Shown here: one piece after another, positions 3,111 to 14,114 of the stretch
Position numbering within the stretch: the first letter of the stretch is position 1
Layout: every line of letters begins with the position of its first letter
Sequence record: PQ657772.1
Length of the DNA: 64,000 bases
Direction: 5' to 3' (one strand)
Notes under the pieces: generated by a model
What the model saw: only the letters and a program-made list of their open reading frames with translations
Database searches by the model: none
Told to the model about the DNA's origin: nothing
Translations under genes and position numbers: made by a program

Positions 3111-3452
3111 TTATTTCCCAGATGCTGGGTATGTTTTAAACATATAGTGACATTGTACTAAATCATTGAATTTCAATCCAAAATCTTTAGTACCCATCAG
3201 TGTGTGATAAAAATAATGTGAAATCTCATTGGTTTCTGCATCTTTAATATAGATACCGAACTCGGTACAGCAGAACTGAACGACTTCATTATAACCTACT
3301 AATTTCGAAACAACAAGTACTTGATCATAAGAATTTGCATCAAAACGAATGATATACATATCTTCAGTTTCAGGATGCACAATCATACCACCACGTGAAA
3401 TGATTTTGACAAAATTCTCGCTCAAGTACTGAATTGTTGAACTCATGTCCAT
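3111..3452 (-). CDS. Hypothetical protein
   Basis: 113 aa ORF in a tight minus-strand array. Confidence 0.75.
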   Translation of the reverse strand: MDMSSTIQYLSENFVKIISRGGMIVHPETEDMYIIRFDANSYDQVLVVSKLVGYNEVVQFCCTEFGIYIKDAETNEISHYFYHTLMGTKDFGLKFNDLVQCHYMFKTYPASGK

Positions 3453-6821: not shown

Positions 6822-7230
6822 TAAACGGATTTGGAACCTCTTCTGGAATCAATCTTTTAACTTTAAGGATAGCACTAATGTCCTCAAATGTCAATCCATT
6901 TAGATCGTTTACGAGACAGTACTGAAAGAATTTTTCTTCAGTATCAATATCGTCAAAATTCAATTCAATTCTAGTGTCATAATAATCACTATTTACATTA
7001 GCAATTCTGATTTTAACTCGTTCAAAATACACATCAAATGAATAAAAATGATTATTGATTTCATAACCAAGAAAAATATTAAAACATTTACTCAAATCAG
7101 TGGTTTCGTTCAAATCGTCATCATAGCAAAAAACTCTAACTTCACCAATATCTTCTAATTGTACATCATGCAGTGACCATGCGTTGTTTTTTAATACGTA
7201 GTTCACCATTTTAACAATGTTGTATGTCAT
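6814..7230 (-). CDS. FQxST-box family paralog
   Basis: DTEEKFFQYCLVNDLNGLTFEDI. Confidence 0.8.
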   Translation of the reverse strand: MTYNIVKMVNYVLKNNAWSLHDVQLEDIGEVRVFCYDDDLNETTDLSKCFNIFLGYEINNHFYSFDVYFERVKIRIANVNSDYYDTRIELNFDDIDTEEKFFQYCLVNDLNGLTFEDISAILKVKRLIPEEVPNPFND

Positions 7231-7246
7231 AGTGTACCTTATAAAA

Positions 7247-7642
7247 TTATTTACGATTCCTTGCGGAGTTCTTGTTCCTTGCTCTGAATGTTGGTGTCAT
7301 TGAATGACAATTAGGGCAAAGGATTTTTAAATTTGGTAGGTCATTATTTGTAGCATCACCATCAATGTGCTCAACTTCTGTCAGTACTGCACCATCAGTT
7401 GGATGACGTTTATCCCATCCACACTCTTCACATGCAGTTCCGCGTGTTTCATGTAGGTATCTTCTCACAAATGGACATAACTGTATAGTAATACCTTTAT
7501 ATCCTGGATGTTCACCGTTAAGCCATTTATCAACTTTCTGTTGATATTGTAGCTCTTGTTGACATGCAACACTACAATATTTTGTTTGACCCTTTCGAAC
7601 CAATTCAATTTTACAACATGCACAATAACGTTTTTCTTTCAT
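7247..7642 (-). CDS. HNH endonuclease (Zn-binding), directly downstream of tRNA-Thr
   Basis: CEECGW...EVEHIDGDATNNDLPNLKILCPNCHS; start MKEKR at 7642 with GGAG RBS (the track's 7714 start lies in the tRNA). Confidence 0.85.
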   Translation of the reverse strand: MKEKRYCACCKIELVRKGQTKYCSVACQQELQYQQKVDKWLNGEHPGYKGITIQLCPFVRRYLHETRGTACEECGWDKRHPTDGAVLTEVEHIDGDATNNDLPNLKILCPNCHSMTPTFRARNKNSARNRK

Positions 7643-7707
7643 ATAGTTCTCCATATAGTATGGAGTATTTATTTTCAAGAAAAATGTTATTTCTAAGAAT
7701 ATATTTG

Positions 7708-7778
7708 TGGTCAATATTAGAATCGAACTAATGACTCAGACTTACAAGATCCGTGTTATACCATTTAACTAATCAACC
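7708..7778 (-). tRNA. tRNA-Thr(TGT), no encoded CCA (followed by CAA)
   Basis: Acceptor GGTTGAT/ATTGACC, D arm GTTA/TAAC, anticodon arm CGGAT-CTTGTAA-GTCTG, T arm ATTAG-TTCGATT-CTAAT. Confidence 0.8.
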
Positions 7779-7782
7779 AGAT

Positions 7783-8034
<252 letters not shown>

Positions 8035-8036
8035 TA

Positions 8037-8852
<816 letters not shown>

Positions 8853-8869
8853 TCCCTATATCATGTGAA

Positions 8870-9814
<945 letters not shown>

Positions 9815-9845
9815 CCCTTTCGTTTACATTGCACAGTACTTAATC

Positions 9846-10223
<378 letters not shown>

Positions 10224-10239
10224 ATCACCAACTTTAATT

Positions 10240-10578
10240 AAAAAAATGGATGGTGACGCTTTTAAACGCCGCTGTTAATTCAGCTTTATAACCACCCGTT
10301 TTAACTTGCCTTTCGGCTACCTTGACGTGGGGCGTACAGGCTACTAAAAGCAACTACTGTAAACATATTTCCACGCCTTACCCTTTTAAATAAAAGTCCA
10401 TCCGGTTTTCCAGTTTGGTGAAGGATAGTCACCTCTAGTTTAAACCTGCTAGTCAAGTAATAATTGCCTATCGTCCAATTATCAAACCCGTCTAGGTTAA
10501 CATTCACCACTTCCTAGAGTACCAGAGATCTTGTTCTGGATTGCATCGACGTAACTTACACCATATACGTCTGATTGT
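10240..10578 (-). ncRNA. Large structured ncRNA (~340 nt), unknown family
   Basis: Own consensus promoter (10586-10614), about 14 hand-predicted helices, GAAA tetraloop and G-U pairs favour minus strand, ends in T7 run. Confidence 0.75.
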
Positions 10579-10585
10579 GGAATTC

Positions 10586-10610
10586 ATTATATCAGTACTG
10601 AACTATTTAG

Positions 10611-10614
<4 letters not shown>
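10586..10614 (-). promoter_or_regulatory. Repeated sigma70 promoter, copy 2 (drives ncRNA)
   Basis: TTGACT-AAATAGTTCAGTACTGA-TATAAT, identical to copy 1. Confidence 0.85.
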
Positions 10615-11206
<592 letters not shown>

Positions 11207-11210
<4 letters not shown>

Positions 11211-11367
11211 ATTCGTACCAGTAGTTCAATTAAGTACATTTCATATGCTGGATCGTTGATAAGTTTATCATACAGATGTGGCTCTGAAATGAATTCCCAA
11301 TGATACTTTAGCCATTTACCGATACCCGAATATCTAAAATTAATGTCATTCATCCATTCTTCATGTG

Positions 11368-11371
<4 letters not shown>
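11207..11371 (-). CDS. THEEW-family small protein (54 aa)
   Basis: MTHEEWMNDINFRYSGIGKWLKYHWEFISEPHLYDKLINDPAYEMYLIELLVRI; ATGA-coupled. Confidence 0.8.
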
Positions 11372-11532
<161 letters not shown>

Positions 11533-11549
11533 GGTTTAACCTTTAATTG

Positions 11550-11635
<86 letters not shown>

Positions 11636-11639
11636 ATTT

Positions 11640-11755
<116 letters not shown>

Positions 11756-11772
11756 ATAGTCTGTTCCAATAT

Positions 11773-12045
11773 TTATGATTCGGTTTCGGGATTAAATTTT
11801 ATAAATTCATCTTTATGTTCATCTTCAATCGCAATATCTTCTACGTGTTCAGGCCAGATTGTGGTGTCCCCTTGGTAGAAGCGATAGTTATCGAATTCTG
11901 CACTACGTGTTCTTCCCTGTTCCCAACCAATAGTACAGTCATGATATACATCACCACTACGTGTGCGAATGCTTATTGAGTCTTGTGTTTCATAAAGAAC
12001 GTCAATGCGTGTGTTGCGATTTGTATTGAATTTTTCAAAATGCAT
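11773..12045 (-). CDS. Hypothetical protein
   Basis: 90 aa ORF. Confidence 0.7.
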   Translation of the reverse strand: MHFEKFNTNRNTRIDVLYETQDSISIRTRSGDVYHDCTIGWEQGRTRSAEFDNYRFYQGDTTIWPEHVEDIAIEDEHKDEFIKFNPETES

Positions 12046-12065
12046 AGTAATCCCAATAACAATTG

Positions 12066-12284
12066 TTATTCTTGTGGTTTAGTTACACCAACACCAATAA
12101 TACTTTTAATATCAATATGGATATTAGCAAGTTCATTACTGTCAAACGGGTTAGTTTCAGTTACAACAACAGTGGTGTCATTAACTAAAACTACTGAACC
12201 TTTTACACGGTATCCCTGAAGGAGTACTTGTACATTGTCACCAGCGTTTAATGAGTTAATAACTTCTAATAGAGTAGATTCCAT
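12066..12284 (-). CDS. Hypothetical protein (Sm/SH3-like beta pattern)
   Basis: 72 aa, AAGGA RBS. Confidence 0.7.
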   Translation of the reverse strand: MESTLLEVINSLNAGDNVQVLLQGYRVKGSVVLVNDTTVVVTETNPFDSNELANIHIDIKSIIGVGVTKPQE

Positions 12285-12294
12285 TTTATTTTCC

Positions 12295-12492
12295 TTACGG
12301 TTTACTATTTTTACGTTTTTCTGATTCGGGTATAGTTTTCATTTCACCAATACATAGTTCCATGATGAGCACACCTTTGTCATTATAACGTACTACATCT
12401 TCAATGTCAAAATGTCTCGCACTATGAACAACTTCAATACATGCATCATCGGGATATGATTCCAATAATGCTACAAGTTCTGCTTTAGTCAC
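12295..12492 (-). CDS. Hypothetical protein
   Basis: MTKAELVALLESYPDDACIEV, common phage small-protein pattern; GTG start with AGGA. Confidence 0.75.
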   Translation of the reverse strand: MTKAELVALLESYPDDACIEVVHSARHFDIEDVVRYNDKGVLIMELCIGEMKTIPESEKRKNSKP

Positions 12493-12505
12493 TTTGGATT
12501 CCTCG

Positions 12506-12854
<349 letters not shown>

Positions 12855-12864
12855 ACTATATCTT

Positions 12865-13035
12865 CTATTTCCTAATTGCAAGCTCATAGATGTACCAGTG
12901 ATTACTATCCTCATCAAGTACAAATGATTTGAAAAGTTGTTTATCTTTTAACACATCATAATGACCTTGGCGTATACCAAAACCAAAAGGATTATGTTTA
13001 AATTTTAGTTCATCTAACCATTCTTTGTGTGTCAT
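12865..13035 (-). CDS. THEEW-family small protein (56 aa)
   Basis: MTHKEWLDELKFKHNPFGFGIRQGHYDVLKDKQLFKSFVLDEDSNHWYIYELAIRK; ATGA-coupled; not in ORF track. Confidence 0.75.
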   Translation of the reverse strand: MTHKEWLDELKFKHNPFGFGIRQGHYDVLKDKQLFKSFVLDEDSNHWYIYELAIRK

Positions 13036-13217
13036 CTTATTTTGTCCATGACTGCTATACTAAAATATGTACCAAAATCATCACAATTGATGATGTTGTT
13101 ATAGTACTCGATTGGATTACGCAATGATATATACAATTCAAGCTTAAAATAGTATATATCTGCTGCATTTATATTATAGTGTAGATTAAACCACTCATCA
13201 AATGTCTTAGGCTGCAT
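13032..13217 (-). CDS. THEEW-family-like small protein (61 aa)
   Basis: MQPKTFDEWFNLHY... N-terminus matches T(H/F)xEW. Confidence 0.65.
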   Translation of the reverse strand: MQPKTFDEWFNLHYNINAADIYYFKLELYISLRNPIEYYNNIINCDDFGTYFSIAVMDKIR

Positions 13218-13611
13218 TATATTTATCTTTATAAAAATCCATGATTTTAGTCAACAGTACTGCAATCGTATAATCTAAATCAGGATAAAGTAAATTGTAC
13301 TGAAATTCTTCCTCTACACTATAGTTTGTGGTGCAGTACTGATAGTCTTTATAACCAATGGAAAAATGGTTAGGATACAATGTACAACGAAAACGATATG
13401 CTTCATCTGTCATATAATCATTGTATTCAACACAGAAGTATAGTGATTTTGCATTTAATTCAATAAGCTCGACGAAACCATCAGGTAATGAATGGTTATA
13501 AATTACTGAATCTTCATTAAACCATTCATAGTATTTTTCCAAAAAATCACTAATGGATACATCCAGACTTTGTATAGGTGGAGTTATGATAATTTGAACT
13601 TCTTTATTCAT
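13207..13611 (-). CDS. FQxST-box family paralog
   Basis: SVEEEFQYNLLYPDL. Confidence 0.75.
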   Translation of the reverse strand: MNKEVQIIITPPIQSLDVSISDFLEKYYEWFNEDSVIYNHSLPDGFVELIELNAKSLYFCVEYNDYMTDEAYRFRCTLYPNHFSIGYKDYQYCTTNYSVEEEFQYNLLYPDLDYTIAVLLTKIMDFYKDKYNAA

Positions 13612-14114
13612 TTCGACCCCTTACTATATTTCACGTATGGGCTATCATACAGATCATAACTTTTTTGTGCACGTTCTTTTCGGCGTTCATACATGATTCT
13701 ATCATAATCTTTGGCTTTCTGATTTGCTTCATTATACAATTTTAAAATTAGCAAAAATGCATCAAGGTCAGGATAGTTTGCTGGATTGATAGTACTCAGC
13801 ATAAATCGTTCTTCTTCAGTTCTAGCTAAGTCAAATTCATACTTAATAGTTTTATATCCACTCCATTTATATGTATGTGTTACTTTATTAGTAAGTACAT
13901 TGTACCCAACGAAGTCAGTACTACCATCAAGTACGCGAGTAATCATAATAGATGTACCAATGACAATCTGCACAGAACTCATATCTGAAGTTTTAAAGTA
14001 ATATATATTACCACGTCGCAGATTAACTTCTCGATCTCCAATGCGAACATGCTTAATAACTTCAGTTAATGGTTCTGGGACACCACGAATCGGCATGTTA
14101 GTATTCCTCAACAA
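13608..14114 (-). CDS. FQxST-box family paralog
   Basis: RTEEERFMLSTINP. Confidence 0.75.
   Translation of the reverse strand: MLRNTNMPIRGVPEPLTEVIKHVRIGDREVNLRRGNIYYFKTSDMSSVQIVIGTSIMITRVLDGSTDFVGYNVLTNKVTHTYKWSGYKTIKYEFDLARTEEERFMLSTINPANYPDLDAFLLILKLYNEANQKAKDYDRIMYERRKERAQKSYDLYDSPYVKYSKGSK

Follow-up and report, generated by a model that had tools for sequence, protein, structure and literature searches.

A pseudoknotted RNA module of about 190 nt within the tRNA islands of jumbo phages and other phages

Background

What is the product, if any, of the DNA that separates a promoter of near-consensus sequence from a run of seven T residues within the tRNA island of the jumbo phage EC.P1? 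The DNA analysed here (the window) is a stretch of 64,000 nucleotides from sequence record PQ657772.1, of which bases 7000-14000 are 100% identical to Escherichia phage EC.P1, an Asteriusvirus of the 121Q/PBECO4 group with a genome of 356 kb. All positions refer to the window, and those of minus-strand features are mostly given in the direction of transcription. The initial annotation, made from the sequence alone, read the region as one non-coding RNA of about 340 nt. The non-coding, structured unit with its own promoter and terminal U-run has held up, but it consists of two separable modules, here called A and B. We know of no function for the stable RNAs of the T4 and T5 tRNA regions, which were found in the 1970s, or for the GOLLD and ROOL RNAs.

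Results and discussion

Locus and transcription unit

The locus is enclosed by a tRNA island comprising five minus-strand tRNA genes between 7707 and 11729, as identified by ARAGORN and Rfam, and these are interspersed with small ORFs and an HNH-type endonuclease ORF. Four paralogous minus-strand ORFs of 54-56 aa, which begin with MTH[EK]EW, are located at 11046-11210, 11207-11371, 11368-11532 and 12865-13035; all four lie between tRNA genes, and three are in tandem. At 9124-9215 (minus strand), adjoining tRNA-Met and tRNA-Asn, ARAGORN recognized a tRNA-Ser with the anticodon ACT, in which A at position 34 is unusual for a bacterial-type tRNA set.

A sigma-70 promoter is found at 10614-10586 on the minus strand, with 11 of 12 matches to the consensus. 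It is composed of the -35 box TTGACT (10614-10609), a 17-nt spacer and a TG-extended -10 box, TATAAT (10591-10586), and it points into the region as initially proposed. The 3' end of the unit is marked by the run of seven T residues (10246-10240), directly after a 7-bp stem formed by GGGTGGT (10297-10291) and ACCATCC (10254-10248). The predicted fold of the minus strand has a free energy of -95 kcal/mol and a z-score of -2.68, with none of 100 shuffled sequences folding as well, versus a z-score of only -0.86 for the plus strand, so that the original choice of strand is also confirmed. Because no promoter separates modules A and B in EC.P1, the two would form one primary transcript of about 345 nt. 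They are joined by a putative AU-rich linker hairpin, CUUUU-AUUU-AAAAG (10396-10383, minus strand), which corresponds to the CTTTT/AAAAG helix of the initial annotation and is present in the sequence. An AU-rich stretch also occurs 3' of module A in other jumbo phages, with a different sequence.

The promoter cassette of module A is present twice in phages ph0011 and BF17. We considered an insertion inside the RNA of these two phages and rejected it; the extra DNA consists of an upstream ORF and the second copy of the promoter, and the RNA is intact. In phage phAPEC6 the same cassette is reused ahead of a tRNA.

Fold and covariation of module A

Module A (10585-10396, minus strand) comprises about 190 nt, folded into eight helices and three pseudoknots, and scores 236.9 bits with R1, a covariance model that we built from 12 sequences and a hand-drawn structure. 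The fold includes P2 (10575-10566/10553-10545), P3 (10539-10535/10526-10522), P4 (10518-10513/10496-10491), P5 (10483-10476/10466-10459, with the loop GACGAUA), S1 (10458-10454/10448-10444), P7 (10433-10429/10421-10417) and P8 (10413-10410/10405-10402). Standard pairs occupy 95.8% of 867 cells, compared with 80.3% after column shuffling and 24-40% when the partners were slid, and double changes were found in 29 of the 50 pairs; these counts were taken from the alignment of R1 matches, which was fitted to the nested helices of R1 and is hence biased towards them. None of 500 shuffles reached the observed value in any of five measures of covariation.

Five helices drawn in the initial annotation (GACGTA/TACGTC, CCAGA/TCTGG, TCTAGG/CCTAGA, ATAATTG/CAATTAT and GGTGA/TCACC) turn out to be conserved and covarying. 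A sixth, CTGG-AAAA-CCGG, is kept where it exists, with 91.9% of its cells paired, but shows no double change. The long-range helix between the two modules, TACTTGAC/GTCAAGGTA, must be abandoned: its bases in module A form a covarying local hairpin and pseudoknot, and they remain conserved in phages that have no module B. Local pseudoknots thus take its place.

The three pseudoknots had been overlooked. In PK1 (10580-10577/10510-10507), CCAC near the 5' end pairs with GUGG of the P4 loop, and this pairing is replaced by GCAC/GUGC in Aeromonas phages, by CCUC/GAGG in Klebsiella phage KP13-16 and by CUAC/GUAG in L024, an uncultured viral contig. In PK2 (10452-10449/10438-10435), CUAG of the S1 loop pairs with a downstream CUAG across an A-rich loop, with the variants CUGG/CCAG, CAAG/CUUG and CAAG/UUUG; it is modelled as an H-type knot whose third loop is rich in A. 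PK3 (10426-10423/10399-10396) joins the 3' tail to the P7 loop, is 97.2% paired and includes columns with the pair types GC8/AU5/UA1/GU1 and UA12/CG5/UG1; its last base, C10396, is shared with the linker hairpin. Since PK1 holds the 5' end and PK3 the 3' tail, both ends of module A are buried in tertiary pairings. Several unpaired motifs are invariant, namely GACGAUA of the P5 loop, CGG of the P4/P5 junction (which reads CGGGWUUG in most members), UGAC, and GG of the GAUGG tail. They are likely to be sites of tertiary contact or of contact with a partner.

The position of PK1 bears on the transcription start. The -10 box ends at 10586, and the usual start, 7-8 nt downstream at a purine after a pyrimidine, would be A10578 or C10579. 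This lies within the 5' strand of PK1, half of which would be lost. In phage RaK2 and the metagenome contig L021 the -10 box is further upstream, and the whole strand would be transcribed. Either Asteriusvirus transcripts have an atypical start, or read-through transcripts are processed at the AAUU edge of the module, or PK1 may be unformed in this genus.

Distribution of module A and its setting among tRNA genes

We compared a 385-nt query with 50,697 phage records by BLAST. The whole query was found in about 35 Asteriusvirus (97-100% identity) and Alcyoneusvirus (about 81%) genomes, and only its bases 36-224 (10585-10397) matched unrelated phages. These matches were in the T4-like Proteus phages PM2 and Pm5461 and Morganella phage vB_Mm5 (92-93%), the T4-like Shigella phage vB_SdyM_006 (Bragavirus; 85.6%) and the T5-like Proteus phages 1 and 2 (Novosibvirus; 84.5%), with weaker ones in Klebsiella phage KP13-16 (Stephanstirmvirinae, phi92-like) and in the groups of the T4-like Aeromonas phages 65 and CC2. 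Identity stops at the edges of the module, and the flanks are unrelated.

Among the loci examined, R1 recognized 19 copies at 68-237 bits (236.9 in EC.P1 and 68-233 in the 18 others) and, beyond these, L024 at 83 bits. Motif scans added three metagenomic contigs and a 120-kb uncultured viral contig; one of the metagenomic contigs (L023) has two diverged copies of module A, one on either side of a tRNA-Arg. In IMG/VR, both strict and loose motif scans returned mainly known isolates plus L024. With Aeromonas phage 65 as the starting point, a BLAST walk yielded about 20 further, related Aeromonas phages; walks from KP13-16, L024 and L023 reached no new lineage among isolates. No match to module A was found in 5,426 complete Escherichia coli genomes, and in 185,579 species genomes the strict pattern gave no matches and the loose pattern four chance matches, all of which were rejected by R1. 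The family is known from some 55 isolate genomes, together with three contigs from metagenomes and one from an uncultured virus, and is thus rare. Module A is a family present across at least seven phage lineages, including jumbo phages and others, and all of its copies lie in tRNA islands.

In the unrelated phages the copies occupy unannotated gaps of about 190 nt within tRNA clusters; in every case they share the strand of the tRNA genes, and they lie next to or between these genes. The order is Gly-A-Asp in PM2 and vB_SdyM_006, Leu-A-Ser in Proteus phage 1 and KP13-16, Pro-A-Thr in CC2 and AP1, A-Ser in EJP2 and A-Arg-A in L023. The module starts 0-3 nt past the encoded CCA of the upstream tRNA, or a few bases from a -10 box, and usually ends 7-15 nt ahead of the next tRNA. 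According to ARAGORN, the minus-strand tRNA annotation of vB_Mm5 is wrong. In KP13-16, a remnant that follows module A (L006:1620-1680) matches the 3' half of many tRNA-Leu genes of Felixounavirus and Vequintavirus, and is probably a decayed tRNA that ARAGORN does not call.

Module B and the separability of the two modules

Module B (10384-10240, minus strand) consists of a hairpin domain followed by a three-way junction with the U-run. The 5' domain (10384-10307) scores 171 bits with a further model, R2, and is shared with RaK2-like phages, L021 and the Kuravirus phages XT18 and 1-6af. In this domain helix B1, GGCGUGG/CCACGUC (10377-10371/10330-10324), in which double changes occur twice, encloses B2/B3, ACAG..GUUGC-loop-GUAGC..CUGU (10360-10350/10344-10336), and is followed by the hairpin GCC-GAAA-GGC (10317-10308). 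The 3' domain, domain T (10297-10240, minus strand), is closed by the stem GGGUGGU/ACCAUCC (10297-10291/10254-10248) and has the arms GCUG-AAUUAA-CAGC (10284-10271) and GGCG..CGUC (10270-10255); its 3' end is A10247 and the seven U residues (10246-10240). Across module B 93% of pairs are standard and six pairs show double changes, which bears out the helices drawn for it at first (GGCGTGG/CCACGTC, ACAG..CTGT, GCC-GAAA-GGC and the three-way junction). Support for module B is moderate, because only three lineages contribute to it.

The terminal three-way junction is present as first described, but it is a recurrent terminator-type unit and nothing peculiar to this RNA. With R2 we found further copies of domain T in RaK2-like DNA, one of them immediately 3' of a tRNA-Arg and another a short way upstream of module A; the closing stems of these paralogous copies are compensated (GGAUAGU/ACUAUCC and GGAUGAU/AUUAUCC). 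Copies lie at 365-425, 765-817 and 1757-1816 of the metagenome contig L022 and at 2951-2970 and 3332-3351 of locus L002; RaK2-like phages have two or three within a few kb, and the 64-kb window has one. Like intrinsic terminators, domain T combines a stem containing G+C with an immediately following U-run. Unlike simple terminator hairpins, it has a conserved three-way junction and the conserved loops UAUAAA and CUGAAUURACAG, and a simple terminator scan does not call it. Domain T is the probable intrinsic terminator of the unit, and is best read as a reusable terminator-type module.

The two modules are separable, since they occur apart or under separate promoters in several phages. In RaK2, K64-1 and L022, module A is set apart from what follows by a promoter (TTGAAC-17-TATAAT). 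L021 has a separate promoter for module A and no module B 3' to it; what follows is another promoter and a different structured element. In EJP2 tRNA-Ser comes immediately after module A, with module B absent, and the phages with module A in tRNA clusters have module A only. The additional element of L021 (JACCDR011713278.1, minus strand, around 600-770) is unrelated and about 160 nt long, with module A on one side and a tRNA-Arg on the other. Its terminal helix, UAUCAACGGUGAGUAACAUUG/CAAUGUUACUCACCAUUGAUA, comprises 21 bp, and the element is probably another non-coding RNA.

Some relatives of EC.P1 have lost the RNA. In phAPEC6 both modules are deleted, and the first 36 nt of module A are kept and fused to the downstream ORF. 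In Sharanji and EC22.5-2 the match is confined to the first 72 nt of the query, so that these phages probably share the deletion of phAPEC6. In UE-S1, module B is cut back and the 3' strand of the terminator stem is gone. In view of these losses and this truncation, the RNA is accessory and not essential on the isolation hosts.

The arrangement in EC.P1 brings to mind a cis-acting leader or attenuator, in which the terminator would open or close and so determine whether transcription continues into a 125-aa ORF beginning at 10223. The U-run ends 17 nt ahead of the ATG of this ORF; in phAPEC6 the deletion places the promoter almost directly before the ORF homologue; and the invariant tail of module A, GGAUGG, is perfectly complementary to CCAUCC of the terminator, so that an alternative pairing is conceivable. 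However, the GAUGG tail is kept, and pairs with the P7 loop, where both module B and the downstream ORF are absent, and such copies of module A are flanked by tRNA genes. In RaK2 a separate promoter precedes module B, and the ORF downstream of it is a different one; domain T is also found after a tRNA-Arg. In most lineages what follows module A is tRNA genes or a second promoter. We therefore consider this explanation unlikely, although it survives better than those that follow.

Conservation of the DNA rather than of an RNA

Near-identical copies of module A in unrelated phages with unrelated flanks indicate that it has spread horizontally, and would fit transfer within tRNA regions. Homing endonuclease genes are found near several of the loci, including a segD-like gene in vB_SdyM_006, an HNH gene in RaK2 and one in P19. 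In EC.P1 a 185-aa ORF at 9277-9834 (minus strand), about 560 nt downstream of the RNA, looks like a homing endonuclease of the HNH/NUMOD type from its sequence; the homologous region of the relative WPEC3 is annotated as 'HNH endonuclease'. In T4, SegB is reported to cause preferred inheritance of the tRNA region (PMC2330249), which would fit the near-identical copies. Module A might then be no RNA at all, only a target or cargo of a homing endonuclease, or a hot spot of recombination in tRNA regions. We find this very improbable. Homing could account for the spread, but not for the covariation: compensatory changes in helix pairs (the 29 noted above), G.U pairs possible on only one of the two strands, and the constant orientation of the element relative to tRNAs and promoters point to selection on an RNA.

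Comparison with known RNA families and coding potential

A search of the whole window with Rfam 15 at gathering thresholds returned only the five tRNAs, and at E <= 10 the regions 10100-10750 and 10232-10385 gave only noise of 12-20 bits. Five homologous loci likewise gave only tRNAs. The families covered include tmRNA, RNase P, 6S, group I and II introns, T-box, HEARO, GOLLD, ROOL, raiA and riboswitches, and ARAGORN found neither a tmRNA nor an additional tRNA at the RNA. These searches uphold the original statement that no signature of tmRNA, RNase P, 6S RNA or a group I intron is present, and the comparison with Rfam proposed there gives no significant match. Module A is a previously uncatalogued RNA family, as far as Rfam 15 and the searchable literature show; a catalogue of about 10,000 viral candidates (PMC10690425, 2023) could include it.

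A tRNA- or tmRNA-like function, in which the 3' domain would imitate the acceptor stem of an alanine tRNA and be CCA-tailed and charged, or take part in ribosome rescue, seems hardly credible. The closing stem GGGUGGU/ACCAUCC followed by A does supply G1-C, G2-C, G3.U and an A at the discriminator position; T4 RNA C has a canonical T arm, and RNA1 and RNA2 of T5 are annotated as tRNA-like. The GACGGGWUUG of module A presumably resembles the 5' region of tmRNA, and we count it on the same side. However, the 5' end does not pair with the 3' end, and there is no CCA and no tag-like ORF; a canonical T arm with a 5-bp stem and a 7-nt loop is also absent, the hairpin of domain T being a 4-bp stem with an 8-nt loop, NUUAAAAN. 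Neither the tRNA model nor the tmRNA model of Rfam gave a match at E <= 10, not even with the 154-nt stretch (10232-10385) alone, and R2 found no match in T4 rnaC or the T5 RNAs. The G.U that would correspond to the conserved G3.U70 of alanine identity is present in the copies of module B, but it is replaced by A-U in two paralogous copies of domain T, and we have rejected the alanine-acceptor reading of the 3' stem for this reason.

That the locus encodes a protein, either a 69-aa GTG ORF (10510-10301, minus strand) overlapping both modules or a 39-aa ORF (10353-10234), is practically untenable: the 69-aa frame is open only here and in the Proteus T5-like phages, and is broken by stops or shifts in RaK2, K64-1, PM2, Pm5461, vB_Mm5, vB_SdyM_006, KP13-16, all of the Aeromonas phages and the metagenomic copies; its variable columns show no strong excess at the third codon position (13/10/18); and its GTG start sits in PK1. 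The non-coding reading of the initial annotation is thus borne out. Several Asteriusvirus records (for example, SD-1_S14, L031:506-715) list the 69-aa ORF as a hypothetical protein, which is probably a mis-annotation.

Comparison with other phage RNAs

Module A is comparable in its genomic surroundings to the non-coding RNAs of the T4 and T5 tRNA clusters, namely T4 RNA C and RNA D (species 1 and 2) and RNAI, RNAIII, RNAIV, RNA1, RNA2, RNA2H and RNAX of T5, which are likewise on the tRNA strand and abut tRNA genes. In T4, RNA C and RNA D are late RNAs validated by Northern blotting, with function unknown (PMC9697503; see also PMC3014915), and the T5 record NC_005859 annotates eight 'stable RNAs with unknown functions'. 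Module A is homologous to none of them in sequence or structure: R1 and R2 found nothing in the T4 tRNA region, and their best match in T5 was 12.7 bits, in the promoter-proximal part of rnaX. The canonical T arm of T4 RNA C and the tRNA-like annotation of T5 RNA1 and RNA2 have no counterpart in module A, with its three pseudoknots.

GOLLD and ROOL are often located near tRNA islands, and their function is unknown (10.1101/2024.12.08.627333). Like module A, they are RNAs of phages and prophages with complex pseudoknotted folds, and they have no known protein partner. In contrast, they are three to four times larger, have been published mainly from other bacterial groups, and their Rfam models do not match module A, for which there is no hint of multimers.

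An element that we call XT18-type, found in Kuravirus, Gamaleyavirus, 9NA and SopranoGao, shares GACGAUA and GAUGG with module A. As in the 3' half of module A, an H-type pseudoknot whose third loop is A-rich precedes a hairpin of 5 bp with a 7-nt loop, but the element is much shorter and is undetected by R1. In Kuravirus it is situated 3' of a module B-like 5' domain. The XT18-type element may be related to module A or may have converged on it. The element is an unannotated unit of about 60 nt, AGUC-CRGACGAUAUCUG-AGU-GACU-UUAAAAA-CAGAUGG-AG, followed by the 5-bp hairpin with a UGGAAUC loop. Examples are at L008:1560-1625 (Kuravirus XT18), L033, L027:1195-1260 (IME11), L028:1195-1260 (Salmonella phage 9NA) and L029:1210-1275 (Klebsiella phage SopranoGao). 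Its stems covary between phages, and it is found in more than 100 records of N4-like phages, Kuravirus and other phages.

A possible mode of action

We consider it probable, with considerable room for doubt, that the EC.P1 locus is a non-coding unit whose core, module A, is a stable trans-acting RNA freed by tRNA processing. RNA polymerase would start from the promoter at 10614-10586, transcribe module A, the AU-rich hairpin and module B, and stop at the three-way junction and U7. Module A would be the functional core of the unit. Host tRNA-processing enzymes would cut it out of tRNA-type precursors: RNase E would act at the 5' edge, where AAUU is conserved, and RNase P at the tRNA that follows, and exonucleases would then trim the product. 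Module A may then accumulate as a stable RNA because both of its ends are buried. Its shape would allow it to bind a protein or a small ligand, and it would act in trans in this way, with neither coding nor long antisense pairing involved. Module B is a second, separable RNA domain, with a 3' part that is mainly a terminator, of a type reused by RaK2-like phages.

Conclusion

Module A probably has a general role in infected Enterobacterales, to judge from the identity of more than 90% that has been kept between jumbo, T4-like and T5-like phages. Far more doubtful, and put forward here only as a possibility, is that it represents a new compact RNA class of ribozyme or aptamer grade, carried by virulent phages along with their tRNA sets and manipulating host RNA metabolism or immunity. 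Such an RNA would, for example, be a decoy or inhibitor of a defence nuclease that targets tRNAs or senses RNA, or would modulate RNase E, RNase P or CCA-adding activity in favour of the phage tRNAs. Module A is tractable: it is about 190 nt long, its fold, including three pseudoknots, is fixed by covariation, it is present in at least seven lineages, among them phages of E. coli K-12, Klebsiella, Proteus and Aeromonas that are easy to grow, and natural deletion variants exist in phAPEC6 and Sharanji. It deserves an Rfam entry, and its annotation as a hypothetical protein should end. If the role proposed here is true, module A would provide the first functional handle on the 50-year-old puzzle of the stable RNAs in phage tRNA islands.
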